Assembly: GCA_964019335.1 (NCBI GenBank)
Contig: OZ025770.1
Span: 1-32,737, forward strand
Direction: 5' to 3'
Source: Diplonema japonicum
Taxonomy: Eukaryota; Protista; Euglenozoa: Diplonemea
Length of the DNA stretch: 32,737 bases
In this document: positions 1 through 32,737 of the stretch, in pieces
Position numbering within the stretch: the stretch's first letter is position 1
How the letters are laid out: each line of letters begins with the position of its first letter
The notes under the pieces: generated by a model
What the model was told of the DNA's origin: nothing
Database searches by the model: none
Seen by the model: only the letters and a program-made list of their open reading frames with translations
Position numbers and translations under genes: made by a program

Positions 1-699
1 GGAGTATGGAACCAGTGGAATACCAGGAGTACTAACACAGGTAATGCCACCAATACACTGAGTGTGTGGCATAGAGCATATCCTACCACCAGTACACACA
101 CAGTATGCATGAGCATATATCCTGTGTAGTGCTACATGTGCAATGGATGCATGTAGTACTGTCATAGGTATCATGGCTAGTACATAGTATGATATCAGTA
201 GCACAGGTATCCTGAGAGTGGAGGAACCTGTGGAATACTAGAAGTACTAACTCAGAGAATACCAGGAGTATGAAGTACACCATCTCTAGCTAACACAGGT
301 AATACCACCAGTAGCTGTGGTGGTGCCATGTACTGTATACCATATCATGCACACCAGTACATACTGTATGTACGTAGGGAATACATAGTATGTAGTGCAT
401 AGAGCACAGGGGATACATACTGTGCTAACTATGATATCTAGTGCTGTCAGTAGTACAGAGGTGTGCAGAGAGGGAATACCAGAAGTAGTGGAATCATGAG
501 AACTAATAAACCACTAATCTGGAGAAGTACGAAGGATAGGAACAGGGACATATCTAGTAGCACAGGCAATGGCACCAATGCACAGGATGCAGTGCCATGT
601 ACTGTATACCATATCATGCACACCAATACATACTGTATGTACGTAGGGAATACATAGTATGTAGTGCATAGAGCACAATGGAGGCATGTAGTACTACCA

Positions 700-900
700 T
701 AGATAATAGGGTGTCTAGAGGATAGGTCATATGGGGTGATTATGGGCATACCCAAAATACCACTTTATTGGTAGGTACCTCATTCTATTCGAAGACTCAA
801 GGGAATGGTCCCAGACCAATTCTGAGAAATGATATCCCCTTTTTGGGAAAAGGCCCGGTGAGCCTCGGACCTCATTTCAGGCCTAAAAGGGGGTCTCTAG
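700..900. other. A/T-tract-containing segment specific to type I constant regions (copies at ~6590-6790 and ~12325-12525)
   Basis: Contains AAAA/TTTT runs that are rare elsewhere, and a CCTTTT-TGGG-AAAAGG hairpin at 838-853. Absent from the constant regions after 16.2 kb. Confidence 0.75.
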
Positions 901-1374
901 GTGTACAGGGCATATCTAGTAATATGTAGGTAGTACATTATCCCTTGTATACTGTAGTATTAGGGACATGTAGTGCTACCATTAGTACAGACAGTGTAAC
1001 ACAGTGAATATGTTGTTGCACCAGTATTCACACAGTGTATCTAAGTAAGTAACTATGGAAGTACATGTTAATAGTAAGTACATCATCCCATAAGGGTGTG
1101 GCTATACATCTGGGATACCTGTGGGGAGCATATACAGGTGGTAGTACAGACACACTGTTTAGCTAAGTACCATAACACAGGAACATAGACAGTGTGAAGT
1201 ACGTAATACCACAGTATGCATGGGATAACAGTAAGTACAGTAACTACACATTATCAGAGAACAGCAGAGAGTGTGTAACCCCTGATAACGGTGTGCTGTA
1301 CAGAGGTATCCTTAGAAAGGGTGCTTTAACCTGGGGATTAGGGTGTAGAGACCTGTATATGGACTCATGTCCTT

Positions 1375-1392
1375 ACGCGCGCGCGCGCGCGT
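1375..1392. repeat. A(CG)8T perfect palindrome / Z-DNA-prone tract, first of two per unit
   Basis: ACGCGCGCGCGCGCGCGT followed by GGGGGATATAGCGAGGTAATT. Second copy at 2108-2125; both recur in all six units. Confidence 0.95.
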
Positions 1393-2103
1393 GGGGGATA
1401 TAGCGAGGTAATTCTACGAATTCATCCGTAGTGTCCCACAAGGGTTTCAGGAATTGCATAGCTACAGGGACGTAAACCCCTAGATTGGGACCCCTCGGAA
1501 CCCTTAGATCCTGGGATTAGGGATGCTAGGACCTGTTAGCAGAGGTACGGAGGCCTGTGGGGAGTATATCCAGAGGTACTGATATCCATAACATACAAGA
1601 GGAAGCACACTGTTTAGCTAAGTACAGTAACACACTACACACTAACACAGAGAGTAACACAGACAGTGTGTAGTAATACATGTAGTAGCACAAGCAGTGC
1701 TCCAGAAGGGTGTAGCTATGCATCTGGGGATAACACCAACTAACAGGAACACCAGCAGAAGGGTGTGTTCTCTGGGGGTAGCACAAGTAGGGTGTCTGGT
1801 GGTGGTATCTCATAACAGGGGATTCCATAGCAGGGCACGTCTGGGGGCCTGTAGTAAGTACCTGTTAGCAGAGACACACACTGTTACCAGGGACACACAC
1901 TGTTAGCAGAGAGTATGTAACCACTGGTATGGGGGTAGTACATTATCCCTTGTATACTGTGGTATTAGCCCCTACACACTGTCTACTAACCCCTATGTAT
2001 TAGACCCTTATCCTAACCCCTCTCTGTACCCCCTTATATTGGGGGTCCTATACCCTACCCCTTTGGGGACACCTTGGGGGCACCTTACTATCCTAACAGT
2101 TAT

Positions 2104-2400
2104 CCTTACGCGCGCGCGCGCGCGTGGGGGATATAGCGAGGTAATTTGCATAATTCTTACGTAGTGTCCCACAAGGGTTTCAGGAATTGCATAGCTACAG
2201 GGACGTAGATATTCTCTGGGACGTAGCGGGTTAATTTGCAGAAATCACCCGTAGGAGCCCAGAGAGGTGTCCCAATATTGGAGGGCTACAGGGACGTAAA
2301 CCATTCCAGGGCTCCTACGGGGTAATTCTACGAATTCACCCGATACAGCCCTGAAGGGGTTCAGGAATCGGAGGGCTACAGGGACGTAAACCCCTAGCAT
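2104..2400. promoter_or_regulatory. Candidate replication origin / control block
   Basis: (CG)8 tract; GCTACAGGGACGTA at 2194, 2285 and 2375 (also at 1461); 13-bp inverted repeat 2248-2260/2309-2321; palindrome CCAATATTGG 2272-2281. Conserved in all units. Function is inferred only. Confidence 0.4.
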
Positions 2401-2452
2401 GCCCCCTTATCCAGCCCTTCTGGGACCCCTCAATATACCCTCCTATTACCAC

Positions 2453-3038
2453 CTATAATACTATCATTACATACTATGTAAGTACTGTGTATGTATCATA
2501 TATCTATCCCATGTATACGGGGGGATATATGTACATGCATAATACTAGTATTACATAATGATGTACTAACTGTATTAATGGTATCATAACCCTACTCATC
2601 CCCTCATGACATCATCCTGGGGATGGGGACCCCTTCTCTAGATCCCAGGATCCCAGGGGTGGAGACCCAACCTCTAGATCCCAGGATCCCTAGCTTGGAT
2701 ACCATCTCTAGACACCACCACATCCTGAGAGTGTCTGTAGAGATAACTATAATACTATCATTACATACTATGTAAGTACTGTGTATGTATCATATATCTA
2801 TCCCATGTATACGGGGGGATATATGTACATGCATAATACTAGTATTACATAATGATGTACTAACTGTATTAATGGTATCATAACCCTACTCATCCCCTCA
2901 TGACATCATCCTGGGGATGGGGACCCCTTCTCTAGATCCCAGGATCCCAGGGGTGGAGACCCAACCTCTAGATCCCAGGATCCCTAGCTTGGATACCATC
3001 TCTAGACACCACTACATCCTGAGAGTGTCTGTAGAGAT
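2453..3038. repeat. ~294-bp tandem duplication within the constant region
   Basis: CTATAATACTATCATTACATAC starts at 2453 and again at 2747; each copy ends GTGTCTGTAGAGATA and contains CTAGATCCCAGGATCCC subrepeats. Present in every unit. Confidence 0.92.
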
Positions 3039-3407
3039 ACCAGCATACTACTTATCATGTAAGTACTCTGTGTAGTAGTACATACAGTATATGATATACA
3101 TGTACTAGCACTAACACAGTGTGTATGCCTACTTATCATAGTAGTAGTATTATCATATCATGGCATGATGGTACATCCTAAGGATGCCAGCATATCCAGA
3201 GAGTGGGGAGAACACACCATCTCTCTAGCCATGACATCATGGAGCATACCACTAACGGTATCATTATCATAGATCATGTCATGCATGGATCATGGGATGT
3301 ACAGAGTAGAGGTATTATCTACTAGAAGAGCAGCTGTGCTCTCTAGCCATACCATCTACAGAGTATGCTGGCAGTATACTCTAGTAACCATGTACCTCAT
3401 ATCCTAG

Positions 3408-3452
3408 TCATGAGGATGGTGGCGGTATACTCTACCAACCATGTACCTCATA
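3408..3452 (+). repeat. 45-bp cassette-bracketing direct repeat, left copy (right copy 4598-4642)
   Basis: TCATGAGGATGGTGGCGGTATACTCTACCAACCATGTACCTCATA is identical on both sides of the cassette; pairs also start at 9300/10330, 15048/16239, 20978/22010 and 26704/27736. Confidence 0.92.
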
Positions 3453-3630
3453 CTGTAGCTACTCCATTATCCCTGTTCTAGGGATGGAGTGGTGGTGTAC
3501 ATCCTAGGCAACAATGCCTGTGGGAATACCACCAGTACTACAGAGAGTATCTCATACCATATCCTAGTCATGAGGATGATGGTGTGCTCTCTCTAGGGAA
3601 GTACATCCGTAGTACTATCAATAGGATATA

Positions 3631-3764
3631 CTGTAGTAAGTACAATGGTAAGTACTCATGCCAATGCATGTAGTGCTACCAGTACTGTCAGTAGTATATA
3701 CTGTAGTAAGTACAATGGTAAGTACTCATGCCAATGCATGTAGTGCTACCAGTACTGTCAGTAG
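3631..3764 (+). repeat. 70-bp spacer repeats adjoining gene modules (further copy from ~4010)
   Basis: CTGTAGTAAGTACAATGGTAAGTACTCATGCCAATGCATGTAGTGCTACCAGTACTGTCAGTAG at 3631, 3701 and 4010; variants occur in every complete cassette. Confidence 0.9.
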
Positions 3765-3784
3765 ATCCATAGCTAAGCAGAGAG

Positions 3785-4003
3785 GCTAGTGCAGGACACA
3801 GACGTCCTGTGAGCCTGTGCTGATGCTACTGACGTACGCAGAGCTGCTGTGCATAGCTGTGAGCAGAGGGATGCACTAACTATGCTCTCTAGTATCCTCA
3901 TCAGTACTCTGTCCATGCTATCAGCCTGTGTACCAGAGACAACACACAGCTGTAATACAGAGTATGTCATGCTAGCAATACTCAGAGAGCACAGCTGCTC
4001 TCA
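3785..4003 (-). CDS. nad7: NADH dehydrogenase subunit 7, internal gene module (fragment; ends approximate)
   Basis: YSVLQLCVVSGTQADSMDRVLMRILESIVSASLCSQLC aligns by eye with the Nad7/NuoD motif Y..L.FD(I/V)PVG..GDCYDRYL.R.EEM.QSL.II.QC. Unique sequence between spacer repeats. Confidence 0.72.
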
Positions 4004-4151
4004 TACATACTGTAGTAAGTACAATGGTAAGTACTCATGCCAATGCATGTAGTGCTACCAGTACTGTCAGTAGTAGTACATCCTGTAGTAATGCTAGTAG
4101 AATGTACCCGTACCATTCCTAGCTAGCACAGGTAATGCATGTAGTACTATC

Positions 4152-4424
4152 AGCTACGATGGTCATCTCTAGCAGCACTCCTACCAGCACATGACCAGCA
4201 ATGGCATTGCAGGCTGCACGTAGAGTAAGAGAGACACTACGGAAGGACGTAGATGCCATCTCTATACAGCCCAGTACAATACGTAGGATGGCAGGAAGAC
4301 CATATCCTAAGTACATGTGGGCCAATGCACTAGCACTACGAGTATAGCTAGCCATGCACAGTGCTACGAAGGCATGGGCTGCATTGATCAGTAGTATCAC
4401 CAGTAGATATGATACCACCAGTAT
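4152..4424 (-). CDS. atp6: ATP synthase subunit 6 (a), internal gene module (fragment)
   Basis: GLPAILRIVLGCIEMASTSFRSVSLTLRAACNAIAGHVLVGVL matches the Atp6 signature IE..S...R..SL..RL.AN..AGH.L, including the essential Arg. Confidence 0.93.
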
Positions 4425-4597
4425 CAGTACTGTCATACTATCAGTAAGTACAGTGGTAAGTACTCATACCATTCCTAGCTAGCACAGGTAATGCATGTAG
4501 TACTGTCAGTAGTACAGAGAGTACAGGCATGTCATATCCTGGGAGTACACACACCAATGCATCCCAGGGATGTGGTGTGCTCTCTAGCCATACCATC

Positions 4598-7500
4598 TCA
4601 TGAGGATGGTGGCGGTATACTCTACCAACCATGTACCTCATAATGAGGAGAACATGCTGGTAAGGATACTAACTAAGCATGAATACCTCTAAGCAGTACT
4701 ATCCTAAGTATGGGCAGACACACAGAGGATGTATCCCCAATACAGATAGTATGATATCAGTAGTACATCCTGTAGTACATACCATGGCATAGTACAGAAG
4801 GAGATGCCATGTTAGCTGTGCAGTAGATATCTAGTGGCACCATTCCCTGAGAACACAGGAGTATGGAACCAGTGGAATACCAGGAGTACTAACACAGGTA
4901 ATGCCACCAATACACTGAGTGTGTGGCATAGAGCATATCCTACCACCAGTACACACACAGTATGCATGAGCATATATCCTGTGTAGTGCTACATGTGCAA
5001 TGGATGCATGTAGTACTGTCATAGGTATCATGGCTAGTACATAGTATGATATCAGTAGCACAGGTATCCTGAGAGTGGAGGAACCTGTGGAATACTAGAA
5101 GTACTAACTCAGAGAATACCAGGAGTATGAAGTACACCATCTCCAGCTAACACAGGTAATACCACCAGTAGCTGTGGTGGTGCCATGTACTGTATATGAT
5201 ATCATGCACACCAATACATACTGTATGTACATAGGGAATACATACTGTGCAGTGCATAGAGCACAGGGGATACATACTGTGCTAACTATGATATCTAGTG
5301 CTGTCAGTAGTACAGAGGTATCCTGAGAGTAGTGGTAACCCTAAGTTAGGGAAAGTACTAACTCAGAGAACACCAGGAGTATGGAACTAGGGAAGTACGT
5401 CATATCCTAGTAGCACAGGCAATGGCACCAATGCACAGGATGCAGTGCCATGTACTGTATATGATATCATGCACACCAATACATACTGTATGTACATAGG
5501 GAATACATACTGTGCAGTGCATAGAGCACAGGGGATACATACTGTGCTAACTATGATATCTAGTGCTGTCAGTAGTACAGAGGTATCCTTAGAAGGGTAG
5601 TGATCCCAGAGAAGCAGTGGAATCAGGAGAACCACTAACTTGGGGAATACCAGAAGTAGTACATCCCTGGTAGCACAGGTAATACCACCAGTAGCTGTGG
5701 TGGTGCCATGTACTGTATATGATATCATGCACACCAATACACACAGTATGCATGAGCATATATCCTGTGTAGTGCTACATGTGCAATGGATGCATGTAGT
5801 ACATCCTGTAGTACATACCATGGCATAGTACAGAAGGAGATGCCATGTTAGCTGTGCAGTAGATATCTAGTGGCACCATTCCCTGAGAACACAGGAGTAT
5901 GGAACCAGTGGAATACCAGGAGTACTAACACAGGTAATGCCACCAATACACTGAGTGTGTGGCATAGAGCATATCCTACCACCAGTACACACACAGTATG
6001 CATGAGCATATATCCTGTGTAGTGCTACATGTGCAATGGATGCATGTAGTACTGTCATAGGTATCATGGCTAGTACATAGTATGATATCAGTAGCACAGG
6101 TATCCTGAGAGTGGAGGAACCTGTGGAATACTAGAAGTACTAACTCAGAGAATACCAGGAGTATGAAGTACACCATCTCTAGCTAACACAGGTAATACCA
6201 CCAGTAGCTGTGGTGGTGCCATGTACTGTATACCATATCATGCACACCAGTACATACTGTATGTACGTAGGGAATACATAGTATGTAGTGCATAGAGCAC
6301 AGGGGATACATACTGTGCTAACTATGATATCTAGTGCTGTCAGTAGTACAGAGGTGTGCAGAGAGGGAATACCAGAAGTAGTGGAATCATGAGAACTAAT
6401 AAACCACTAATCTGGAGAAGTACGAAGGATAGGAACAGGGACATATCTAGTAGCACAGGCAATGGCACCAATGCACAGGATGCAGTGCCATGTACTGTAT
6501 ACCATATCATGCACACCAATACATACTGTATGTACGTAGGGAATACATAGTATGTAGTGCATAGAGCACAATGGAGGCATGTAGTACTACCATAGATAAT
6601 AGGGTGTCTAGAGGATAGGTCATATGGGGTGATTATGGGCATACCCAAAATACCACTTTATTGGTAGGTACCTCATTCTATTCGAAGACTCAAGGGAATG
6701 GTCCCAGACCAATTCTGAGAAATGATATCCCCTTTTTGGGAAAAGGCCCGGTGAGCCTCGGACCTCATTTCAGGCCTAAAAGGGGGTCTCTAGGTGTACA
6801 GGGCATATCTAGTAATATGTAGGTAGTACATTATCCCTTGTATACTGTAGTATTAGGGACATGTAGTGCTACCATTAGTACAGACAGTGTAACACAGTGA
6901 ATATGTTGTTGCACCAGTATTCACACAGTGTATCTAAGTAAGTAACTATGGAAGTACATGTTAATAGTAAGTACATCATCCCATAAGGGTGTGGCTATAC
7001 ATCTGGGATACCTGTGGGGAGCATATACAGGTGGTAGTACAGACACACTGTTTAGCTAAGTACCATAACACAGGAACATAGACAGTGTGAAGTACGTAAT
7101 ACCACAGTATGCATGGGATAACAGTAAGTACAGTAACTACACATTATCAGAGAACAGCAGAGAGTAGTATGTAACCCCTGATAACGGGTGTGCTGTACAG
7201 AGGTATCCTTAGAAAGGGTGCTTTAACCTGGGGATTAGGGTGTAGAGACCTGTATATGGACTCATGTCCTTACGCGCGCGCGCGCGCGTGGGGGATATAG
7301 CGAGGTAATTCTACGAATTCATCCGTAGTGTCCCACAAGGGTTTCAGGAATTGCATAGCTACAGGGACGTAAACCCCTAGATTGGGACCCCTCGGAACCC
7401 TTAGATCCTGGGATTAGGGATGCTAGGACCTGTTAGCAGAGGTACGGAGGCCTGTGGGGAGTATATCCAGAGGTACTGATATCCATAACATACAAGAGGA

Positions 7501-9344
7501 AGCACACTGTTTAGCTAAGTACAGTAACACACTACACACTAACACAGAGAGTAACACAGACAGTGTGTAGTAATACATGTAGTAGCACAAGCAGTGCTCC
7601 AGAAGGGTGTAGCTATACATCTGGGGATAACACCAACTAACAGGAACACCAGCAGAAGGGTGTGTTCTCTGGGGGTAGCACAAGTAGGGTGTCTGGTGGT
7701 GGTATCTCATAACAGGGGATTCCATAGCAGGGCACGTCTGGGGGCCTGTAGTAAGTACCTGTTAGCAGAGACACACACTGTTACCAGGGACACACACTGT
7801 TAGCAGAGAGTATGTAACCACTGGTATGGGGTAGTACATTATCCCTTGTATACTGTGGTATTAGCCCCTACACACTGTCTACTAACCCCTATGTATTAGA
7901 CCCTTATCCTAACCCCTCTCTGTACCCCTTATATTGGGGTCCTATACCCTACCCCTTTGGGGACACCTTGGGGGCACCTTACTATCCTAACAGTTATCCT
8001 TACGCGCGCGCGCGCGCGTGGGGGATATAGCGAGGTAATTTGCATAATTCTTACGTAGTGTCCCACAAGGGTTTCAGGAATTGGAGGGCTACAGGGACGT
8101 AGATATTCTCTGGGACGTAGCGGGTTAATTTGCAGAAATCACCCGTAGGAGCCCAGAGAGGTGTCCCAATATTGGAGGGCTACAGGGACGTAAACCATTC
8201 CAGGGCTCCTACGGGGTAATTCTACGAATTCACCCGATACAGCCCTGAAGGGGTTCAGGAATCGGAGGGCTACAGGGACGTAAACCCCTAGCATGCCCCC
8301 TTATCCAGCCCTTCTGGGACCCCTCAATATACCCTCCTATTACCACCTATAATACTATCATTACATACTATGTAAGTACTGTGTATGTATCATATATCTA
8401 TCCCATGTATACGGGGGATATATGTACATGCATAATACTAGTATTACATAATGATGTACTAACTGTATTAATGGTATCATAACCCTACTCATCCCCTCAT
8501 GACATCATCCTGGGGATGGGGACCCCTTCTCTAGATCCCAGGATCCCAGGGGTGGAGACCCAACCTCTAGATCCCAGGATCCCTAGCTTGGATACCATCT
8601 CTAGACACCACCACATCCTGAGAGTGTCTGTAGAGATACCTATAATACTATCATTACATACTATGTAAGTACTGTGTATGTATCATATATCTATCCCATG
8701 TATACGGGGGATATATGTACATGCATAATACTAGTATTACATAATGATGTACTAACTGTATTAATGGTATCATAACCCTACTCATCCCCTCATGACATCA
8801 TCCTGGGGATGGGGACCCCTTCTCTAGATCCCAGGATCCCAGGGGTGGAGACCCAACCTCTAGATCCCAGGATCCCTAGCTTGGATACCATCTCTAGACA
8901 CCACCACATCCTGAGAGTGTCTGTAGAGATACCAGCATACTACTTATCATGTAAGTACTCTGTGTAGTAGTACATACAGTATATGATATACATGTACTAG
9001 CACTAACACAGTGTGTATGCCTACTTATCATAGTAGTAGTATTATCATATCATGGCATGATGGTACATCCTAAGGATGCCAGCATATCCAGAGAGTGGGG
9101 AGAACACACCATCTCTCTAGCCATGACATCATGGAGCATACCACTAACGGTATCATTACCATAGATCATGTCATGCATGGATCATGGGATGTACAGAGTA
9201 GAGGTATTATCTACTAGAAGAGCAGCTGTGCTCTCTAGCCATACCATCTACAGAGTATGCTGGCAGTATACTCTAGTAACCATGTACCTCATATCCTAGT
9301 CATGAGGATGGTGGCGGTATACTCTACCAACCATGTACCTCATA
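4598..9344. repeat. Constant region, unit 2 (type I; internal 1036-bp repeat period)
   Basis: Identical ORF markers at 4831 and 5867 (1036 apart); contains the A/T-tract segment, two (CG)8 tracts and the ~294-bp duplication. Confidence 0.92.
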
Positions 9345-9540
9345 CTGTAGCTACTCCATTATCCCTAGAGAAGGGAATGGTGGTGGTGTACGTCCTAGGC
9401 ACAATGCCTGTGGGGAATACCACCAGTACTGTGAGTAGTACATCCTAGCTAAGCAGAGAAGGAGATGCTCCTGCTCATGCCAATGCATGTAGTGCTATCA
9501 GTACTATCAGTAGTATATCCTGTAGTAAGTACAATGATAA

Positions 9541-9894
<354 letters not shown>

Positions 9895-9949
9895 TAGTGC
9901 TATCAGTACTATCAGTAGTATATCCTGTAGTACTAGCTGTAGGGTGCCT

Positions 9950-10177
9950 AGGAAGAGCAATGCCTTCACTGAGGTACACCACCATGAATGCTACAGCACC
10001 ATGATCTACGTAGTAACCAGATACCAGCTCTGGCTCACACTCTAGTACATCGTATGGATGCAGTGAGCACTCTACCAATGCTATGCACAGGTACACCATC
10101 ATAGCTGGTAGTGCTGCAGAGAGTACTGATGTAGTAACCATGGTACTCATGAGAGTAGTACTACTGATGATACCATG
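9950..10177 (-). CDS. nad1: NADH dehydrogenase subunit 1, internal gene module (fragment)
   Basis: ALVECSLHPYDVLECEPELVSGYYVDHGAVAFMVVYLSEG matches the Nad1 motif LAETNR.PFDL.E.ESELVSGFNVEY....FALFFLAEY. Confidence 0.93.
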
Positions 10178-10329
10178 TAAGCACAGTGCTACATACTCAT
10201 GCCATTCCTAGCTAAGCAGGAGAATGCATGTAGTGCTGTCAGTAGTACAGAGAGTACAGGCATGTATATCCTGGGAGTACAGACACCAATACATCCCAAG
10301 GATGTGGTGTGCTCTCTAGCCATACCATC

Positions 10330-13300
10330 TCATGAGGATGGTGGCGGTATACTCTACCAACCATGTACCTCATAATGAGGAGAACATGCTGGTAAGGATA
10401 CTAACTAAGCATGAATACCTCTAAGCAGTACTATCCTAAGTATGGGCAGACACACAGAGGATGTATCCCCAATACAGATAGTATGATATCAGTAGTACAT
10501 CCTGTAGTACATACCATGGCATAGTACAGAAGGAGATGCCATGTTAGCTGTGCAGTAGATATCTAGTGGCACCATTCCCTGAGAACACAGGAGTATGGAA
10601 CCAGTGGAATACTAGAAGTACTAACACAGGCAATGCCACCAATACACAGAGTGTGTGGCATAGAGCATATCCTACCACCAGTACACACACAGTATGCATG
10701 AGCATATATCCTGTGTAGTGCTACATGTGCAATGGATGCATGTAGTACTGTCATAGGTATCATGGCTAGTACATAGTATGATATCAGTAGCACAGGTATC
10801 CTGAGAGTGGAGGAACCTGTGGAATACTAGAAGTACTAACTCAGAGAATACCAGGAGTATGAAGTACACCATCTCCAGCTAACACAGGTAATACCACCAG
10901 TAGCTGTGGTGGTGCCATGTACTGTATACCATATCATGCACACCAATACATACTGTATGTACATAGGGAATACATAGTATGTAGTGCATAGAGCACAGGG
11001 GATACATACTGTGCTAACTATGATATCTAGTGCTGTCAGTAGTACAGAGGTATCCTGAGAGTAGTGGTAACCCTAAGTTAGGGAAAGTACTAACTCAGAG
11101 AATACCAGGAGTATGGAACTAGGGAAGTACGTCATATCCTAGTAGCACAGGCAATGGCACCAATGCACAGGATGCAGTGCCATGTACTGTATATGATATC
11201 ATGCACACCAATACATACTGTATGTACATAGGGAATACATAGTATGTAGTGCATAGAGCACAGGGGATACATACTGTGCTAACTATGATATCTAGTGCTG
11301 TCAGTAGTACAGAGGTATCCTGAGAAGGGTAGTGATCCCAGAGAAGCAGTGGGATCAGGAGAACCACTAACTTGGGGAATCCCTGAAGTAGTACATCCCT
11401 GGTAACACAGGTAATACCACCAGTAGCTGTGGTGGTGCCATGTACTGTATATGATATCATGCACACCAATACACACAGTATGCATGAGCATATATCCTGT
11501 GTAGTGCTACATGTGCAATGGATGCATGTAGTATATCCTGTAGTACATACCATGGCATAGTACAGAAGGAGATGCCATGTTAGCTGTGCAGTAGATATCT
11601 AGTGGCACCATTCCCTGAGAACACAGGAGTATGGAACCAGTGGAATACCAGGAGTACTAACACAGGTAATGCCACCAATACACTGAGTGTGTGGCATAGA
11701 GCATATCCTACCACCAGTACACACACAGTATGCATGAGCATATATCCTGTGTAGTGCTACATGTGCAATGGATGCATGTAGTACTGTCATAGGTATCATG
11801 GCTAGTACATAATATGATATCAGTAGCACAGGTATCCTGAGAGTGGAGGAACCTGTGGAATACTAGAAGTACTAACTCAGAGAATACCAGGAGTATGAAG
11901 TACACCATCTCCAGCTAACACAGGTAATACCACCAGTAGCTGTGGTGGTGCCATGTACTGTATATGATATCATGCACACCAATACATACTGTATGTACAT
12001 AGGGAATACATAGTATGTAGTGCATAGAGCACAGGGGATACATACTGTGCTAACTATGATATCTAGTGCTAGGAGTAGTACAGAGGTGTGCAGAGGGAAT
12101 ACCAGAAGTAGTGGAATCATGAGAACTAAATAAACCACTAATCTGGAGAAGTACGAAGGATAGGAACAGGGGCATATCTAGTAGCACAGGCAATGGCACC
12201 AATGCACAGGATGCAGTGCCATGTACTGTATACCATATCATGCACACCAATACATACTGTATGTACGTAGGGAATACATAGTATGTAGTGCATAGAGCAC
12301 AATGGAGGCATGTAGTACTACCATAGATAATAGGGTGTCTAGAGGATAGGTCATATGGGGTGATTATGGGCATACCCAAAATACCACTTTATTGGTAGGT
12401 ACCTCATTCTATTCGAAGACTCAAGGGAATGGTCCCAGACCAATTCTGAGAAATGATATCCCCTTTTTGGGAAAAGGCCCGGTGAGCCTCGGACCTCATT
12501 TCAGGCCTAAAAGGGGGTATCTAGGTGTACAGGGTATATCTAGTAATATGTAGGTAGTACATTATCCCTTGTATACTGTAGTATTAGGGACATGTAGTGC
12601 TACCATTAGTACAGACAGTGTAACACAGTGAATATGTTGTTGCACCAGTATTCACACAGTGTATCTAAGTAAGTAACTATGGAAGTACATGTTAATAGTA
12701 AGTACATCATCCCAGAAGGGTGTGGCTATACATCTGGGGATACCTGTGGGGAGCATATACAGGTGGTAGTACAGACACACTGTTTAGCTAAGTACCATAA
12801 CACAGGAACATAGACAGTGTGAAGTACGTAATACCACAGTATGCATGGGATAACAGTAAGTACAGTAACTACACATTATCAGAGAACAGCAGAGAGTATG
12901 TAACCCCTAGGTATCCTTAGAAAGGGTGCTTTAACCTGGGGATTAGGGTGTAGAGACCTGTATATGGACTCATGTCCTTACGCGCGCGCGCGCGCGTGGG
13001 GGATATAGCGAGGTAATTCTACGAATTCATCCGTAGTGTCCCACAAGGGTTTCAGGAATTGCATAGCTACAGGGACGTAAACCCCTAGATTGGGACCCTC
13101 GGAACCCTTAGATCCTGGGGTTAGGGATGCTAGGACCTGTTAGCAGAGGTACGGAGGCCTGTGGGGAGTATATCCAGAGGTACTGATATCCATAACATAC
13201 AAGAGGAAGCACACTGTTTAGCTAAGTACAGTAACACACTACACACTAACACAGAGAGTAACACAGACAGTGTGTAGTAATACATGTAGTAGCACAAGCA

Positions 13301-15092: not shown

Positions 15093-15452
15093 CTGTAGCT
15101 ACTCCATTATCCCTAGAGAAGGGAATGGTGATGGTGTATATCCTAGGCAACAATGCCTGTGGGGAATACCACCAGTACTGTGAGTAGTACATCCTAGCTA
15201 AGCAGAGAAGGAGATGCTCCTGCTCATGCTATGGCTGCATCAGTACTGTCATACTATCAGTAGGATATACTGTAGTAAGTACAGTGCTACGTACTCATGC
15301 CAATGCATGTAGTGCTACCAGTACTATCAGTAGGATATACTGTAGTAAGTACAGTGCTACGTACTCATGCCAATGCATGTAGTGCTACCAGTACTATCAG
15401 TAGGATATACTGTAGAGCAGAGAAGGAGATGCTCCTGCTCCTATCACCAATG

Positions 15453-21022: not shown

Positions 21023-21054
21023 CTGTAGCTACTCCATTATCCCTAGAGAAGGGA

Positions 21055-21204
21055 ATGGACTACGTACTGACCTACATGCTGCCATCTCTATGACATGCAT
21101 CCCGTAGTGTGCTACTAACAGAGCTACCACTATCACAGTGGATACGTGGTGAGCATGTGCTTGTGCTCTTCTACGATGGCACACCACGATGCATAGCCTG
21201 TAAG
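21055..21204 (+). CDS. nad8: NADH dehydrogenase subunit 8 (2x[4Fe-4S]), 5' gene module
   Basis: MDYVLTYMLPSLWHASRSVLLTELPLSQWIRGEHVLVLFYDGTPRCIACK (TGA 21091-21093 read as Trp) matches Nad8/NuoI E.GPLSPRFRGEHALRRY..G.ERCIACK. Confidence 0.93.
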
Positions 21205-21227
21205 CACCAGTACAGTGCTACATCCTC

Positions 21228-21398
21228 TAAGGTAAGCAGTGCATGCGCCCCGTCCATTGCCACTGTCCTCCTCCTGAGCCTGCTGGGATAAGATAGTGGG
21301 AGCCTCCTCGCCACTTCCTCCCATTCTATCTGAGGTAAGGTAAGCACCTGTGCTCTCTCTGTGAAGTAGTAGTAGTATTGCAGTAGCACAGTCCTGCG
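21228..21398. other. Unassigned unique GC/C-rich segment, candidate third module
   Basis: Unique sequence inside the cassette with atypical composition; 21239-21335 is flanked by TAAGGTAAGCA direct repeats (21228-21238, 21336-21346). No confident protein match. Confidence 0.4.
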
Positions 21399-21681
21399 TA
21401 CTCATGCCAATGCATGTAGTGCTACCAGTACTATCAGTAGTAAGTACAATGGTAAGTACTCATGCCAATGCATGTAGTGCTACCAGTACTATCAGTAGTA
21501 TATCCTAGCTAAGCAGAGAAGGAGATGCTCCTGCTCATACCATGGCTGCACCAGTACTGTCATACTATCAGTAAGTACAATGGTAAGTACTCATACCATT
21601 CCTAGCTAGCACAGGTAATGCATGTAGTGCTGTCAGCAGCAGTACCACAGCTAAGCAGGCCTGCTACTACATAACCTAGCT

Positions 21682-21891
21682 ATGATCTACTCCACGCATG
21701 CAATGCTGGAAGCTACCAATCTAGCCATAGTAGTATTCATAGCTAGTGGTGCAATGCATGTGCTGTGCATCCTATCCAGGGCATTGTACACCATGAACCT
21801 GTACGTAGAGCTGGTATGGCTCTTAGTACCTACAGCTGTAGTCATCCTACTCATTGCAAGAGTAGTGCTACTCCAATGTGCAGAGGAAGAT
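21682..21891 (+). CDS. cox2: Cytochrome c oxidase subunit 2, 5' gene module (transmembrane part)
   Basis: ATG start, hydrophobic helix, then NLYVELVWLLVPTAVVILLIARVVLLQCAEED, matching Cox2 IE.IWT..P.IIL..IA.PS..LLY..DE. The CuA domain is absent. Confidence 0.88.
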
Positions 21892-22009
21892 GTAGCACAG
21901 GTAATGCATATAGTACTATCAGTAGTACAGAGAGTACAGGCATGTATATCCTGGGAGTACAGACACCAATACATCCCAGGGATGTGGTGTGCTCTCTAGC
22001 CATACCATC

Positions 22010-25000
22010 TCATGAGGATGGTGGCGGTATACTCTACCAACCATGTACCTCATAATGAGGAGAACATGCTGGTAAGGATACTAACTAAGCATGAATACCT
22101 CTAAGCAGTACTATCCTAAGTATGGGCAGACACACAGAGGATGTATCCCCAATACAGATAGTATGATATCAGTAGTACATCCTGTAGTACACAGGCAATG
22201 GCATAGTACAGAAGGAGATGCCATGTTAGCTGTGCAGTAGATATCTAGTGGCACCATTCCCTGAGAACACAGGAGTATGGAACCAGTGGAATACTAGAAG
22301 TACTAACACAGGTAATGCCACCAATACACTGAGTGTGTGGCATAGAGCATATCCTACCACCAGTACACACACAGTATGCATGAGCATATATCCTGTGTAG
22401 TGCTACATGTGCAATGGATGCATGTAGTACTGTCATAGGTATCATGGCTAGTACATAGTATGATATCAGTAGCACAGGTATCCTGAGAGTGGAGGAACCT
22501 GTGGAATACTAGAAGTACTAACTCAGAGAATACCAGGAGTATGGAACTACACCATCTCCAGCTAACACAGGTAATACCACCAGTAGCTGTGGTGGTGCCA
22601 TGTACTGTATATGATATCATGCACACCAATACATACTGTATGTACGTAGGGAATACATAGTATGTAGTGCATAGAGCACAGGGGATACATACTGTGCTAA
22701 CTATGATATCTAGTGCTGTCAGTAGTACAGAGGCATCCTGAGAGTAGTGGTAAGCCTAAGTTAGGGAAAGTACTAACTCAGAGAATACCAGGAGTATGGA
22801 ACTAGGGAAGTACGGAGGTATCCTAGTAGCACAGGCAATGGCACCAATGCACAGGATGCAGTGCCATGTACTGTATATGATATCATGCACACCAGTACAC
22901 ACAGTATGCATGAGCATATATCCTGTGTAGTGCTACATGTGCAATGGATGCATGTAGTATATCCTGTAGTACATACCATGGCATAGTACAGAAGGAGATG
23001 CCATGTTAGCTGTGCAGTAGATATCTAGTGGCACCATTCCCTGAGAACACAGGAGTATGGAACCAGTGGAATACTAGAAGTACTAACACAGGTAATGCCA
23101 CCAATACACTGAGTGTGTGGCATAGAGCATATCCTACCACCAGTACACACACAGTATGCATGAGCATATATCCTGTGTAGTGCTACATGTGCAATGGATG
23201 CATGTAGTACTGTCATAGGTATCATGGCTAGTACATAGTATGATATCAGTAGCACAGGTATCCTGAGAGTGGAGGAACCTGTGGAATACTAGAAGTACTA
23301 ACTCAGAGAATACCAGGAGTATGGAACTACACCATCTCCAGCTAACACAGGTAATACCACCAGTAGCTGTGGTGGTGCCATGTACTGTATATGATATCAT
23401 GCACACCAATACATACTGTATGTACATAGGGAATACGTACTGTGCAGTGCATAGAGCACAGGGGATACATACTGTGCTAACTATGATATCTAGTGCTAGG
23501 AGTAGTACAGAGGTATCCTGAGAGTAGTGGTAACCCTAAGTTAGGGAAAGTACTAACTCAGAGAATACCAGGAGTATGGAACTAGGGAAGTACGGAGGTA
23601 TCCTAGTAGCACAGGCAATGGCACCAATGCACAGGATGCAGTGCCATGTACTGTATATGATATCATGCACACCAATACACACAGTATGCATGAGCATATA
23701 TCCTGTGTAGTGCTACATGTGCAATGGAGGCATGTAGTATATCCTGTAGTACATACCATGGCATAGTACAGAAGGAGATGCCATGTTAGCTGTGCAGTAG
23801 ATATCTAGTGGCACCATTCCCTGAGAACACAGGAGTATGGAACCAGTGGAATACCAGGAGTACTAGCACAGGTAATGCCACCAGTACACTGAGTGTGTGG
23901 CATAGAGCATATCCTACCACCAGTACACACACAGTATGCATGAGCATATATCCTGTGTAGTGCTACATGTGCAATGGATGCATGTAGTACTGTCATAGGT
24001 ATCATGGCTAGTACATAGTATGATATCAGTAGCACAGGTATCCTGAGAGTGGAGGAACCAGTGGAATACCAGGAGTACTAACTCAGAGAATACCAGGAGT
24101 ATGGAACTACACCATCTCTAGCTAACACAGGTAATACCACCAGTAGCTGTGGTGGTGCCATGTACTGTATATGATATCATGCACACCAGTACATACTGTA
24201 TGTACATAGGGAATACGTACTGTGCAGTGCATAGAGCACAGGGGATACATACTGTGCTAACTATGATATCTAGTGCTAGGAGTAGTACTGGGAACATATG
24301 ATGGTGCCATTAGTACAGACAGTGTATCTAAGTAAGTAACTATGGAAGTACATGTTAATAGTAAGTACATCATCCCAGAAGGGTGTGGCTATACATCTGG
24401 GGATACCTGTGGGAGCATATACAGGTGGTAGTACAGACACACTGTTTAGCTAAGTACCATAACACAGGAACATAGACAGTGTGAAGTACGTAATACCACA
24501 GTATGCATGGGATAACAGTAAGTACAGTAACTACACATTATCAGAGAACAGCAGAGAGTATGTAACCACTGATAACGGGTGTGCTGTACAGAGGTATCCT
24601 TAGAAAGGGTGCTTTAACCTGGGGATTAGGGTGTAGAGACCTGTATATGGACTCATGTCCTTACGCGCGCGCGCGCGCGTGGGGGATATAGCGAGGTAAT
24701 TCTACGAATTCATCCGTAGTGTCCCACAAGGGTTTCAGGAATTGCATAGCTACAGGGACGTAAACCCCTAGATTGGGACCCCTCGGAACCCTTAGATCCT
24801 GGGATTAGGGATGCTAGGACCTGTTAGCAGAGGTACGGAGGCCTGTGGGGAGTACATCCAGAGGTACTGATATCCATAACATACAAGAGGAAGCACACTG
24901 TTTAGCTAAGTACAGTAACACACTACACACTAACACAGAGAGTAATACAGACAGTGTGTAGTAATACATGTAGTAGCACAAGCAGTGCTCCAGAAGGGTG

Positions 25001-26748
25001 TAGCTATACATCTGGGGATAACACCAACTAACAGGAACACCAGCAGAAGGGTGTGTTCTCTGGGGGCAGCACAAGTAGGGTGTCTGGTGGTGGTATCTCA
25101 TAACAGGGGATTCCATAGCAGGGCACGTCTGGGGGCCTGTAGTAAGTACCTGTTAGCAGAGACACACACTGTTACCAGGGACACACACTGTTAGCAGAGA
25201 GTATGTAACCACTGGTATGGGGTAGTACATTATCCCTTGTATACTGTGGTATTAGCCCCTACACACTGTCTACTAACTAACCCCTATGTATTAGACCCTT
25301 ATCCTAACCCCCCTCTCTGTACCCCTTATATTGGGGGGTCCTATACCCTACCCCCTTTGGGGACACCTTGGGGGCACCTTACTATCCTAACAGTTATCCT
25401 TACGCGCGCGCGCGCGCGTGGGGGATATAGCGAGGTAATTTGCATAATTCTTACGTAGTGTCCCACAAGGGTTTCAGGAATTGGAGGGCTACAGGGACGT
25501 AGATATTCTCTGGGACGTAGCGGGTTAATTTGCAGAAATCACCCGTAGGAGCCCAGAGAGGTGTCCCAATATTGGAGGGCTACAGGGACGTAAACCATTC
25601 CAGGGCTCCTACGGGGTAATTCTACGAATTCACCCGATACAGCCCTGAAGGGGTTCAGGAATCGGAGGGCTACAGGGACGTAAACCCCTAGCATGCCCCC
25701 TTATCCAGCCCTTCTGGGACCCCTCAATATACCCTCCTATTACCACCTATAATACTATCATTACATACTATGTAAGTACTGTGTATGTATCATATATCTA
25801 TCCCATGTATACGGGGGATATATGTACATGCATAATACTAGTATTACATAATGATGTACTAACTGTATTAATGGTATCATAACCCTACTCATCCTCTCAT
25901 GACATCATCCTGGGGATGGGGACCCCTTCTCTAGATCCCAGGATCCCAGGGGTGGAGACCCAACCTCTAGATCCCAGGATCCCTAGCTTGGATACCATCT
26001 CTAGACACCACCACATCCTGAGAGTGTCTGTAGAGATACCTATAATACTATCATTACATACTATGTAAGTACTGTGTATGTATCATATATCTATCCCATG
26101 TATACGGGGGATATATGTACATGCATAATACTAGTATTACATAATGATGTACTAACTGTATTAATGGTATCATAGCTCTACTCATCCCCTCATGACATCA
26201 TCCTGGGGATGGGGACCCCTTCTCTAGATCCCAGGATCCCAGGGGTGGAGACCCAACCTCTAGAGATCCCAGGATCCCTAGCTTGGACCACCATCTCTAG
26301 ACACCACCACATCCTGAGAGTGTCTGTAGAGATACCAGCATACTACTTATCATGTAAGTACTCTGTGTAGTAGTACATACAGTATATGATATACATGTAC
26401 TAGCACTAACACAGTGTGTATGCCTACTTATCATAGTAGTAGTATTATCATATCATGGCATGATGGTACATCCTAAGGATGCCATCATATCCAGAGAGTG
26501 GGAGAACATACCATCTCTCTAGCCATGACATCATGGAGCATACCACTAACGGTATCATTACCATAGATCATGTCATGCATGGATCATGGGATGTACAGAG
26601 TAGAGGTATTATCTACTAGAAGAGCAGCTGTGCTCTCTCTAGCCATACCATCTACAGAGTATGCTGGCAGTATACTCTAGTAACCATGTACCTCATATCC
26701 TAGTCATGAGGATGGTGGCGGTATACTCTACCAACCATGTACCTCATA
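22010..26748. repeat. Constant region, unit 5 (type II)
   Basis: Markers at 22245, 23025 and 23805; near-identical to 16239-21022, with small deletions near 26185 and 26260. Confidence 0.92.
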
Positions 26749-26780
26749 CTGTAGCTACTCCATTATCCCTAGAGAAGGGA

Positions 26781-26930
26781 ATGGACTACGTACTGACCTA
26801 CATGCTGCCATCTCTATGACATGCATCCCGTAGTGTGCTACTAACAGAGCTACCACTATCACAGTGGATACGTGGTGAGCATGTGCTTGTGCTCTTCTAC
26901 GATGGCACACCACGATGCATAGCCTGTAAG
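26781..26930 (+). CDS. nad8: nad8 5' gene module, second copy
   Basis: Same sequence as 21055-21204 at offset +5726. Confidence 0.92.
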
Positions 26931-26953
26931 CACCAGTACAGTGCTACATCCTC

Positions 26954-27124
26954 TAAGGTAAGCAGTGCATGCGCCCCGTCCATTGCCACTGTCCTCCTCC
27001 TGAGCCTGCTGGGATAAGATAGTGGGAGCCTCCTCGCCACTTCCTCCCATTCTATCTGAGGTAAGGTAAGCACCTGTGCTCTCTCTGTGAAGTAGTAGTA
27101 GTATTGCAGTAGCACAGTCCTGCG
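26954..27124. other. Unassigned GC/C-rich segment, second copy
   Basis: Same sequence as 21228-21398 at offset +5726. Confidence 0.4.
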
Positions 27125-27407
27125 TACTCATGCCAATGCATGTAGTGCTACCAGTACTATCAGTAGTAAGTACAATGGTAAGTACTCATGCCAATGCATG
27201 TAGTGCTACCAGTACTATCAGTAGTATATCCTAGCTAAGCAGAGAAGGAGATGCTCCTGCTCATACCATGGCTGCACCAGTACTGTCATACTATCAGTAA
27301 GTACAATGGTAAGTACTCATACCATTCCTAGCTAGCACAGGTAATGCATGTAGTGCTGTCAGCAGCAGTACCACAGCTAAGCAGGCCTGCTACTACATAA
27401 CCTAGCT

Positions 27408-27617
27408 ATGATCTACTCCACGCATGCAATGCTGGAAGCTACCAATCTAGCCATAGTAGTATTCATAGCTAGTGGTGCAATGCATGTGCTGTGCATCCTA
27501 TCCAGGGCATTGTACACCATGAACCTGTACGTAGAGCTGGTATGGCTCTTAGTACCTACAGCTGTAGTCATCCTACTCATTGCAAGAGTAGTGCTACTCC
27601 AATGTGCAGAGGAAGAT
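27408..27617 (+). CDS. cox2: cox2 5' gene module, second copy
   Basis: Same translation as 21682-21891. Confidence 0.88.
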
Positions 27618-27735
27618 GTAGCACAGGTAATGCATATAGTACTATCAGTAGTACAGAGAGTACAGGCATGTATATCCTGGGAGTACAGACACCAATACAT
27701 CCCAGGGATGTGGTGTGCTCTCTAGCCATACCATC

Positions 27736-30700
27736 TCATGAGGATGGTGGCGGTATACTCTACCAACCATGTACCTCATAATGAGGAGAACATGCTGGTA
27801 AGGATACTAACTAAGCATGAATACCTCTAAGCAGTACTATCCTAAGTATGGGCAGACACACAGAGGATGTATCCCCAATACAGATAGTATGATATCAGTA
27901 GTACATCCTGTAGTACACAGGCAATGGCATAGTACAGAAGGAGATGCCATGTTAGCTGTGCAGTAGATATCTAGTGGCACCATTCCCTGAGAACACAGGA
28001 GTATGGAACCAGTGGAATACTAGAAGTACTAACACAGGTAATGCCACCAATACACTGAGTGTGTGGCATAGAGCATATCCTACCACCAGTACACACACAG
28101 TATGCATGAGCATATATCCTGTGTAGTGCTACATGTGCAATGGATGCATGTAGTACTGTCATAGGTATCATGGCTAGTACATAGTATGATATCAGTAGCA
28201 CAGGTATCCTGAGAGTGGAGGAACCTGTGGAATACTAGAAGTACTAACTCAGAGAATACCAGGAGTATGGAACTACACCATCTCCAGCTAACACAGGTAA
28301 TACCACCAGTAGCTGTGGTGGTGCCATGTACTGTATATGATATCATGCACACCAATACATACTGTATGTACGTAGGGAATACATAGTATGTAGTGCATAG
28401 AGCACAGGGGATACATACTGTGCTAACTATGATATCTAGTGCTGTCAGTAGTACAGAGGCATCCTGAGAGTAGTGGTAAGCCTAAGTTAGGGAAAGTACT
28501 AACTCAGAGAATACCAGGAGTATGGAACTAGGGAAGTACGGAGGTATCCTAGTAGCACAGGCAATGGCACCAATGCACAGGATGCAGTGCCATGTACTGT
28601 ATATGATATCATGCACACCAGTACACACAGTATGCATGAGCATATATCCTGTGTAGTGCTACATGTGCAATGGATGCATGTAGTATATCCTGTAGTACAT
28701 ACCATGGCATAGTACAGAAGGAGATGCCATGTTAGCTGTGCAGTAGATATCTAGTGGCACCATTCCCTGAGAACACAGGAGTATGGAACCAGTGGAATAC
28801 TAGAAGTACTAACACAGGTAATGCCACCAATACACTGAGTGTGTGGCATAGAGCATATCCTACCACCAGTACACACACAGTATGCATGAGCATATATCCT
28901 GTGTAGTGCTACATGTGCAATGGATGCATGTAGTACTGTCATAGGTATCATGGCTAGTACATAGTATGATATCAGTAGCACAGGTATCCTGAGAGTGGAG
29001 GAACCTGTGGAATACTAGAAGTACTAACTCAGAGAATACCAGGAGTATGGAACTACACCATCTCCAGCTAACACAGGTAATACCACCAGTAGCTGTGGTG
29101 GTGCCATGTACTGTATATGATATCATGCACACCAATACATACTGTATGTACATAGGGAATACGTACTGTGCAGTGCATAGAGCACAGGGGATACATACTG
29201 TGCTAACTATGATATCTAGTGCTAGGAGTAGTACAGAGGTATCCTGAGAGTAGTGGTAACCCTAAGTTAGGGAAAGTACTAACTCAGAGAATACCAGGAG
29301 TATGGAACTAGGGAAGTACGGAGGTATCCTAGTAGCACAGGCAATGGCACCAATGCACAGGATGCAGTGCCATGTACTGTATATGATATCATGCACACCA
29401 ATACACACAGTATGCATGAGCATATATCCTGTGTAGTGCTACATGTGCAATGGAGGCATGTAGTATATCCTGTAGTACATACCATGGCATAGTACAGAAG
29501 GAGATGCCATGTTAGCTGTGCAGTAGATATCTAGTGGCACCATTCCCTGAGAACACAGGAGTATGGAACCAGTGGAATACCAGGAGTACTAGCACAGGTA
29601 ATGCCACCAGTACACTGAGTGTGTGGCATAGAGCATATCCTACCACCAGTACACACACAGTATGCATGAGCATATATCCTGTGTAGTGCTACATGTGCAA
29701 TGGATGCATGTAGTACTGTCATAGGTATCATGGCTAGTACATAGTATGATATCAGTAGCACAGGTATCCTGAGAGTGGAGGAACCAGTGGAATACCAGGA
29801 GTACTAACTCAGAGAATACCAGGAGTATGGAACTACACCATCTCTAGCTAACACAGGTAATACCACCAGTAGCTGTGGTGGTGCCATGTACTGTATATGA
29901 TATCATGCACACCAGTACATACTGTATGTACATAGGGAATACGTACTGTGCAGTGCATAGAGCACAGGGGATACATACTGTGCTAACTATGATATCTAGT
30001 GCTAGGAGTAGTACTGGGAACATATGATGGTGCCATTAGTACAGACAGTGTATCTAAGTAAGTAACTATGGAAGTACATGTTAATAGTAAGTACATCATC
30101 CCAGAAGGGTGTGGCTATACATCTGGGGATACCTGTGGGAGCATATACAGGTGGTAGTACAGACACACTGTTTAGCTAAGTACCATAACACAGGAACATA
30201 GACAGTGTGAAGTACGTAATACCACAGTATGCATGGGATAACAGTAAGTACAGTAACTACACATTATCAGAGAACAGCAGAGAGTATGTAACCACTGATA
30301 ACGGGTGTGCTGTACAGAGGTATCCTTAGAAAGGGTGCTTTAACCTGGGGATTAGGGTGTAGAGACCTGTATATGGACTCATGTCCTTACGCGCGCGCGC
30401 GCGCGTGGGGGATATAGCGAGGTAATTCTACGAATTCATCCGTAGTGTCCCACAAGGGTTTCAGGAATTGCATAGCTACAGGGACGTAAACCCCTAGATT
30501 GGGACCCCTCGGAACCCTTAGATCCTGGGATTAGGGATGCTAGGACCTGTTAGCAGAGGTACGGAGGCCTGTGGGGAGTACATCCAGAGGTACTGATATC
30601 CATAACATACAAGAGGAAGCACACTGTTTAGCTAAGTACAGTAACACACTACACACTAACACAGAGAGTAATACAGACAGTGTGTAGTAATACATGTAGT

Positions 30701-32521
30701 AGCACAAGCAGTGCTCCAGAAGGGTGTAGCTATACATCTGGGGATAACACCAACTAACAGGAACACCAGCAGAAGGGTGTGTTCTCTGGGGGCAGCACAA
30801 GTAGGGTGTCTGGTGGTGGTATCTCATAACAGGGGATTCCATAGCAGGGCACGTCTGGGGGCCTGTAGTAAGTACCTGTTAGCAGAGACACACACTGTTA
30901 CCAGGGACACACACTGTTAGCAGAGAGTATGTAACCACTGGTATGGGGTAGTACATTATCCCTTGTATACTGTGGTATTAGCCCCTACACACTGTCTACT
31001 AACTAACCCCTATGTATTAGACCCTTATCCTAACCCCCCCCTCTCTGTACCCCTTATATTGGGGGGTCCTATACCCTACCCCCTTTGGGGACACCTTGGG
31101 GGCACCTTACTATCCTAACAGTTATCCTTACGCGCGCGCGCGCGCGTGGGGGATATAGCGAGGTAATTTGCATAATTCTTACGTAGTGTCCCACAAGGGT
31201 TTCAGGAATTGGAGGGCTACAGGGACGTAGATATTCTCTGGGACGTAGCGGGTTAATTTGCAGAAATCACCCGTAGGAGCCCAGAGAGGTGTCCCAATAT
31301 TGGAGGGCTACAGGGACGTAAACCATTCCAGGGCTCCTACGGGGTAATTCTACGAATTCACCCGATACAGCCCTGAAGGGGTTCAGGAATCGGAGGGCTA
31401 CAGGGACGTAAACCCCTAGCATGCCCCCTTATCCAGCCCTTCTGGGACCCCTCAATATACCCTCCTATTACCACCTATAATACTATCATTACATACTATG
31501 TAAGTACTGTGTATGTATCATATATCTATCCCATGTATACGGGGGATATATGTACATGCATAATACTAGTATTACATAATGATGTACTAACTGTATTAAT
31601 GGTATCATAACCCTACTCATCCTCTCATGACATCATCCTGGGGATGGGGACCCCTTCTCTAGATCCCAGGATCCCAGGGGTGGAGACCCAACCTCTAGAT
31701 CCCAGGATCCCTAGCTTGGATACCATCTCTAGACACCACCACATCCTGAGAGTGTCTGTAGAGATACCTATAATACTATCATTACATACTATGTAAGTAC
31801 TGTGTATGTATCATATATCTATCCCATGTATACGGGGGATATATGTACATGCATAATACTAGTATTACATAATGATGTACTAACTGTATTAATGGTATCA
31901 TAGCTCTACTCATAATGGTAGCCCCTCATGACATCATCCTGGGGATGGGGACCCCTTCTCTAGATCCCAGGATCCCAGGGGTGGAGACCCAACCTCTAGA
32001 TCCCAGGATCCCAGGGGTGGAGACCCAACCTCTAGATCCCAGGATCCCTAGCTTGGACCACCATCTCTAGACACCACCACATCCTGAGAGTGTCTGTAGA
32101 GATACCAGCATACTACTTATCATGTAAGTACTCTGTGTAGTAGTACATACAGTATATGATATACATGTACTAGCACTAACACAGTGTGTATGCCTACTTA
32201 TCATAGTAGTAGTATTATCATATCATGGCATGATGGTACATCCTAAGGATGCCAGCATATCCAGAGAGTGGGGAGAACATACCATCTCTCTCTAGCCATG
32301 ACATCATGGAGCATACCACTAACGGTATCATTACCATAGATCATGTCATGCATGGATCATGGGATGTACAGAGTAGAGGTATTATCTACTAGAAGAGCAG
32401 CTGTGCTCTCTCTAGCCATACCATCTACAGAGTATGCTGGCAGTATACTCTAGTAACCATGTACCTCATATCCTAGTCATGAGGATGGTGGCGGTATACT
32501 CTACCAACCATGTACCTCATA
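27736..32521. repeat. Constant region, unit 6 (type II)
   Basis: Markers at 27971, 28751, 29531 and 30540; shares with unit 4 the extra GGGTGGAGACCCAACCTCTAGATCCCAGG subrepeat. Confidence 0.92.
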
Positions 32522-32553
32522 CTGTAGCTACTCCATTATCCCTAGAGAAGGGA

Positions 32554-32703
32554 ATGGACTACGTACTGACCTACATGCTGCCATCTCTATGACATGCATC
32601 CCGTAGTGTGCTACTAACAGAGCTACCACTATCACAGTGGATACGTGGTGAGCATGTGCTTGTGCTCTTCTACGATGGCACACCACGATGCATAGCCTGT
32701 AAG
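32554..32703 (+). CDS. nad8: nad8 5' gene module, third copy (cassette truncated by window end)
   Basis: ATGGACTACGTACTG...TGCATAGCCTGTAAG, same as 21055-21204; not in the ORF track. Confidence 0.92.
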
Positions 32704-32737
32704 CACCAGTACAGTGCTACATCCTCTAAGGTAAGCA

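Follow-up and report, generated by a model that had tools for sequence, protein, structure and literature searches.

We analysed a stretch of 32,737 nucleotides (nt) of DNA, here called the window, which is contig C126 of a 62.5-Mb, 132-contig assembly (G000). Very probably it is part of a diplonemid-type multipartite mitochondrial genome, that of Diplonema japonicum, in which genes are held as short pieces, or modules, that are joined in trans as RNA. This was the central claim of an earlier note on this DNA, and it is supported by the arrangement of backbone and cassettes, by the presence of genes as pieces only, by an in-frame junction at the RNA level and by the lack of introns.

The window consists of 5.6 tandem units of 5.7–5.9 kb each. 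Families of direct repeats return every 5707–5911 nt, exact anchors are spaced by 5897, 5773 and 5726 nt, and comparison of the window with itself by BLAST leaves just short segments without a second copy. When the surroundings of the four distinct cassettes are aligned with one another and the cassette limits are set by the shared flanks, each unit divides into a backbone of ∼4.8 kb that is common to all and a cassette region of 0.85–1.0 kb (842–1003 nt) holding at least two gene pieces. Repeat periodicity, self-comparison and multiple alignment thus agree on the ∼5.8-kb units with a shared non-coding backbone that the earlier note had described. The cassette regions lie at 3483–4483, 9375–10216, 15123–16125, 21053–21896, 26779–27622 and from 32552 to the end, in the order 1/2/3/4/4/4, units 4–6 carrying one and the same cassette.

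The backbone itself contains a 1036-nt unit present twice in units 1–2, a 780-nt unit present three times in units 3–6, and repeats of ∼294 nt. A partial backbone (1–3482) precedes cassette 1, with the ∼294-nt repeats at about 2520–3190, as found by repeat search, self-comparison and alignment. The segment between cassettes 1 and 2 (4484–9374) has the 1036-nt unit at 4858–6929, and that between cassettes 3 and 4 (16126–21052) has the 780-nt unit at 16499–18838; the intervening segment (10217–15122) was delimited by backbone comparison and multiple alignment. Between the first and second copies of cassette 4 the backbone (21897–26778) is 99.7% identical to the one between the second and third (27623–32551), the latter again delimited by backbone comparison. 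One backbone haplotype is common to units 1–2 and another to units 4–6. Successive cassette-4 units, 5773 and 5726 nt long, are separated by an insertion or deletion of ∼42–47 nt in the ∼294-nt repeat block (20440–20560 versus 26189–26290), the third copy matching the first. An Rfam scan of the whole window at gathering thresholds gave 0 matches, to introns or to any other RNA family, in keeping with the earlier observation that no structure typical of group I or II introns is recognisable at module edges, and ARAGORN found no tRNA in the window.

Across the whole assembly, the backbone occurs nowhere outside 11 small contigs, C122–C132, and it is shared by C124–C130 and C132. At least 12 different cassette sets are present on the mitochondrial contigs read, so the same flanks do enclose other cassettes, as the earlier note expected. 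The cox1 pieces are non-overlapping and are spread over C127 (profile positions 37–91), C123 (76–176), C126 (157–233) and C124 (301–352). Published D. japonicum Cox2 likewise maps in pieces, with residues 1–79 on C126, 132–157 on C125 and 158–198 on C128; residues 80–131 are on none of the mitochondrial contigs read (C130 and C132 lay outside this search). No neighbouring part of any of the genes represented in the window is found in the window, as had been claimed. Family searches of the assembly for cox1, nad1 and cox2 returned pieces alone, on mitochondrial contigs alone. The earlier note held that contiguous full-length genes elsewhere would speak against trans-splicing; for these three genes the 62.5 Mb contain neither a contiguous copy nor a match on a nuclear contig, which excludes contiguous genes and nuclear insertions of mitochondrial DNA (NUMTs) in this assembly. 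Neither Cox2 residues 80–131 nor the cox1 module that follows the window's was found. As the 11 contigs appear to carry fewer chromosome types than the 30 reported, the mitochondrial set as deposited is probably not complete.

The evidence for joining at the RNA level comes from cassette 2 (9375–10216, 842 nt), which contains cox1 module 4 on the forward strand at 9611–9833 (223 nt; Pfam COX1, E = 6e-18), with both ends defined by RNA. Four sequencing runs from four studies were placed on 9350–10350 as Logan contigs, a kind of contig that cannot reveal long-range linkage. Contigs from two DNA-like runs of two other studies, X3 and X4, are colinear with the cassette over 9573–9853 and 9903–10268; they cross the borders between module and flank and so confirm the cassette DNA independently. 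Run X12 yielded a 1344-nt contig of a different structure. Its positions 624–846 equal window positions 9611–9833 with 0 differences, and its flanks, of 623 and 498 nt, are absent from this locus. The 30 nt that precede the block are those of C123:7059–7088, where the cox1 piece of C123 ends. The junction between C123 and the window is in frame, ...SLYPWSVG being followed directly by module 4, and it restores conserved Cox1 sequence. Thus a junction-spanning transcript of the kind to be expected does appear to exist, its RNA nature being judged from the contig. In run X1, word depth over the same 9350–10350 region reached 0.6–4.5 million, and over 26,000 short contigs matched there, as would fit a deep Illumina (possibly Hi-C) run of a diplonemid, a group known for its very high content of mitochondrial DNA.

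At the other end of module 4, the two kinds of sequence part. After 9833 the X12 contig reads TTTTT and then CACTATTC..., where the DNA reads CAGTAC, making six Ts when the T at 9833 is counted. Added Us at the junction of cox1 modules 4 and 5 have been reported in all diplonemids studied but Sulcionema (Kaur et al., PMC7049700). We infer, partly from this literature, that the T-run was added after transcription.

The ends of module 4 also appear in relatives. When the 73 residues that it encodes were searched exhaustively with HMMER, six environmental proteins of 94–120 amino acids came up with 78–89% identity, all from ENA metagenome assemblies. In every one of the six, similarity starts at ITxxLL and ends at SHxxHRxA, which are the two RNA-defined ends, indicating that the module breakpoints are conserved. 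A protein of 235 amino acids, P0154, was considered as a candidate mature transcript of a relative and set aside, being only an open reading frame at the DNA level.

These results bear on whether the pieces might be dead, either NUMT-like insertions or decaying pseudogenes, with the functional genes elsewhere. Their fragmentary state, taken alone, would fit such an origin. We nevertheless give it next to no credence: cox1, nad1 and cox2 have no match that is full-length or on a nuclear contig, the backbone is restricted to 11 small contigs, every assigned piece is frame-intact, the RNA-like contig links pieces in frame, published Cox2 is 99–100% identical to the pieces, and the module ends are conserved in the six environmental relatives.

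In the explanation we favour, a trans-spliced multipartite genome, each ∼5.8-kb unit would represent a single mitochondrial chromosome belonging to one size class, made up of the ∼4.8-kb non-coding backbone common to chromosomes and a cassette region in which two or more modules from unrelated genes lie on either strand. Each module would have its own transcript, which is trimmed and then joined in trans to modules of other chromosomes to give mRNA, cox1 module 4 receiving uridines at its 3′ end ahead of joining. The units would be separate circles, and the 32.7-kb contig a walk of the high-fidelity (HiFi) read assembler across near-identical backbones. The data directly support the anatomy, six module identities, the absence of contiguous genes, the one cox1 junction of modules 3 and 4 across two contigs, and the split mapping of Cox2.

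Some observations weigh against this explanation or parts of it. The mitochondrial contigs are linear tandem arrays, and the one in the window is mixed. The library type of X12 is not on record, and its RNA status is judged from the structure of its contig. The 25-mer after the T-run has no match in the whole assembly; since the next cox1 module is missing, the T-run may be encoded at the 5′ end of that module. Inside the two modules compared, cox1 module 4 and the nad1 module, X12 and DNA show neither C-to-U nor A-to-I differences. Substitution editing in diplonemids clusters in certain other modules. Finally, the cassette region of unit 3 (15123–16125, 1003 nt) holds two unique segments, 15441–15757 (3a) and 15855–16083 (3b), and neither was matched to a gene by Pfam, NCBIfam, PDB, homology or ESM Atlas searches.

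The identity of the organism follows from Cox2. The product of 21661–21897 on the forward strand, cox2 module 1 (copy at 27387–27623), is identical at 78 of 79 residues to residues 1–79 of D. japonicum Cox2 (UniProt A0A6G5ZTN1), and shares 70% identity with that of D. ambulator. Because of this 99% match the lineage is assigned to D. japonicum and, on sequence grounds, the species is D. japonicum YPF1604 and the window its mitochondrial DNA. A multipartite genome of some other lineage, such as a prokinetoplastid or a hemistasiid-like relative, wrongly assigned here, is correspondingly very improbable. Mitochondrial genes are fragmented in other euglenozoans too (PMC6792441), so fragmentation as such would allow it; the near-complete identity to D. 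japonicum Cox2, set against 70% for D. ambulator, speaks against it.

The system was therefore already known, since both the module set and an assembly of D. japonicum have been published, the modules in 2020 (PMC7049700) and the assembly in 2025–26 (PMC13598402). Kaur et al. described 30 chromosomes, which fall into 5 classes and of which 23 are multi-module, with a median cassette of ∼1 kb; chromosome sizes were stated to be unknown, as short reads could not bridge the repeats (PMC7049700). The genome note on strain YPF1604 (peDipJapo1.1) reports an assembly of 62.30 Mb with 121 scaffolds, a mean HiFi read length of ∼9.4 kb and the use of MitoHiFi, and says of the mitochondrial DNA only ‘Mitochondrial genome: multipartite’ (PMC13598402). 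The earlier suggestion that the species may be undescribed is refuted by these two publications. The complete sequences of ∼5.7–5.9-kb units appear to be the only addition to published knowledge. As to the companion suggestion, of an undescribed chromosome layout, the mixed tandem arrangement may be a product of assembly and not the layout of a chromosome.

On this last point the contigs differ among themselves. C122, C123 and C128 are homomeric arrays, C124 reads a/b/b and C129 reads X/X/1/1. The nad7 and atp6 cassette of the window (3483–4483) recurs in C129 at 14521–15300 and 20126–20900, with different neighbours from those in C126. The backbones around it in the two contigs are ∼98% identical and one ∼296-nt repeat copy apart, and the modules are essentially identical, which suggests either diverged sister chromosomes or exchange of cassettes between backbones. 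A mixed layout may arise from an assembler walking over circles or from true recombinant multimers. Under the latter possibility, long head-to-tail arrays of at least 33 kb would link units with different cassettes, cassettes would be exchanged between diverged backbones, and the arrays would come from recombination between near-identical backbones, from rolling-circle replication, or both. The mean HiFi read, at ∼9.4 kb, is longer than one unit, so that reads spanning several units could exist, and three of the class-A contigs read (C124, C129 and the window) are mixed. A strict HiFi assembler should not merge backbones as diverged as those of the nad7 and atp6 cassette, and the same ∼98% identity suggests that cassettes move between backbones; the ∼42–47-nt difference between two unit-4 backbone copies is a further point in favour. 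Against this, HiFi assemblers wind several times round small circles. Adjacent backbones are near-identical in units 1–2 and in units 4–6, which would let an assembler step between circles, and the cassettes next to cassette 1 are not the same in C126 as in C129. D. papillatum chromosomes, moreover, are reported (PMC7049700) to be covalently closed, non-catenated circles of 6–7 kb. On balance we regard real arrays as a possible but rather unlikely explanation, and an assembly artefact as considerably the more probable.

The remaining pieces in the window were assigned with varying confidence. Beside cox1 module 4, cassette 2 carries a nad1 piece on the reverse strand at 9953–10186 (Pfam NADHdh, E = 1e-10, profile positions 153–226 of 298; also supported by a search of the organism's own genome). 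Its 3′ end is placed at 9953 by the RNA-like X12 contig and its 5′ end lies at or beyond 10186. The cassette region of unit 1 (1001 nt), defined by its shared-flank limits and by two occurrences of the same pair in C129, has two modules. One is atp6, on the reverse strand at ∼4155–4423 in a unique segment (Pfam ATP-synt_A, E = 1.1e-6, profile positions 94–171 of 217). The other, at 3803–3967 on the reverse strand, inside the unique segment 3778–4004, is weakly assigned to nad7 (NCBIfam NuoD, E = 0.01 and 0.03, profile positions 231–286 of 384–386); searches of this piece with PF00346 and against PDB and ESM Atlas gave no match.

The cassette region of unit 4 (21053–21896, 844 nt) has an identical copy at 26779–27622 and a partial third at 32552–32737. 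In addition to cox2 module 1 it contains a nad8 piece on the forward strand at 21121–21207, with copies at 26847–26933 and 32620–32706, recognised by the motif PLSQWIRGEH...RCIACK (NuoI, E = 1.8e-4). Among its PDB matches, 23 of 25 are TYKY/NDUFS8/NuoI proteins, all aligned at one motif. Over the whole assembly the NuoI model found only nuclear ferredoxin-like open reading frames, the filter of that search having missed the short mitochondrial piece. After the nad8 piece come ∼190 nt of unique sequence (21208–21397); multi-module chromosomes of D. japonicum average about three modules, and this segment may hence hold a further, unrecognised module.

Of the genes listed in the earlier note, cox1, cox2, atp6, nad1 and nad8 are thus identified, nad7 is retained only tentatively and nad4L is dropped. 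The nad4L-like piece, MLEATNLAIVVF, is cox2 module 1, by the same identity of 78 in 79 residues, and PF00420 has no match to nad4L in the whole assembly. A second NuoK-like motif, in the +1 frame of cassette 3a, was rejected as nad4L, no homologue being found, and cox2 was rejected for cassette 3b, for which neither Pfam nor PDB nor tblastn with D. japonicum Cox2 gave a match. Module 1 of cox2 opens with CTG (21661–21663) where published Cox2 has Met, so that translation starts at a codon other than ATG or the Met is a convention of annotation. A suspected cluster of cox2 editing on C125 turned out to be a plain module boundary at residues 131/132. On C128 (1975–1985), the DNA of the last cox2 module reads ...VVAWAWVH where the published protein ends ...VVAWF; added Us and polyadenylation may create both the last residue, Phe, and the stop codon.

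Compared with known systems, the window is closest to D. japonicum as described by Kaur et al. (PMC7049700), being of the same species by Cox2 and sharing multi-module cassettes of ∼1 kb, chromosome classes with common constant regions, trans-splicing and, probably, the U-appendage between cox1 modules 4 and 5. That description was based on short reads, whereas the window offers complete units with their 780-nt, 1036-nt and ∼294-nt repeats. Class A and B chromosomes of D. papillatum (PMC3035467, PMC7049700) are similar in being 6–7 kb long and mostly constant with a short unique cassette; their cox1 is in about nine modules and has Us added between modules 4 and 5, as probably happens here. 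The window differs from them in that every unit has two or more modules, which belong to unrelated genes and may lie on either strand. In this respect it resembles the multi-module, bi-cassette chromosomes of D. ambulator, where unrelated modules in either orientation lie ∼100 nt apart; there, however, the constant regions are different and Cox2 module 1 is only 70% identical (PMC5658414). Trans-splicing of group II introns that are discontinuous, in plant and algal organelles, also joins exons from separate loci as RNA. In contrast to those systems, the module edges of the window have no intron structure detectable by Rfam, and junctions are flush, one of them probably with added Us.

To our knowledge, diplonemid mitochondria show the most extreme gene fragmentation of all, and identification of the enzymes responsible for joining their modules is still incomplete. 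With complete units, origins, promoters and processing signals can be sought in the constant region. A further question that the units raise is whether differing cassettes are physically linked. If the long arrays were real, they would alter the view of how about 30 chromosome types are segregated and kept at their copy numbers.

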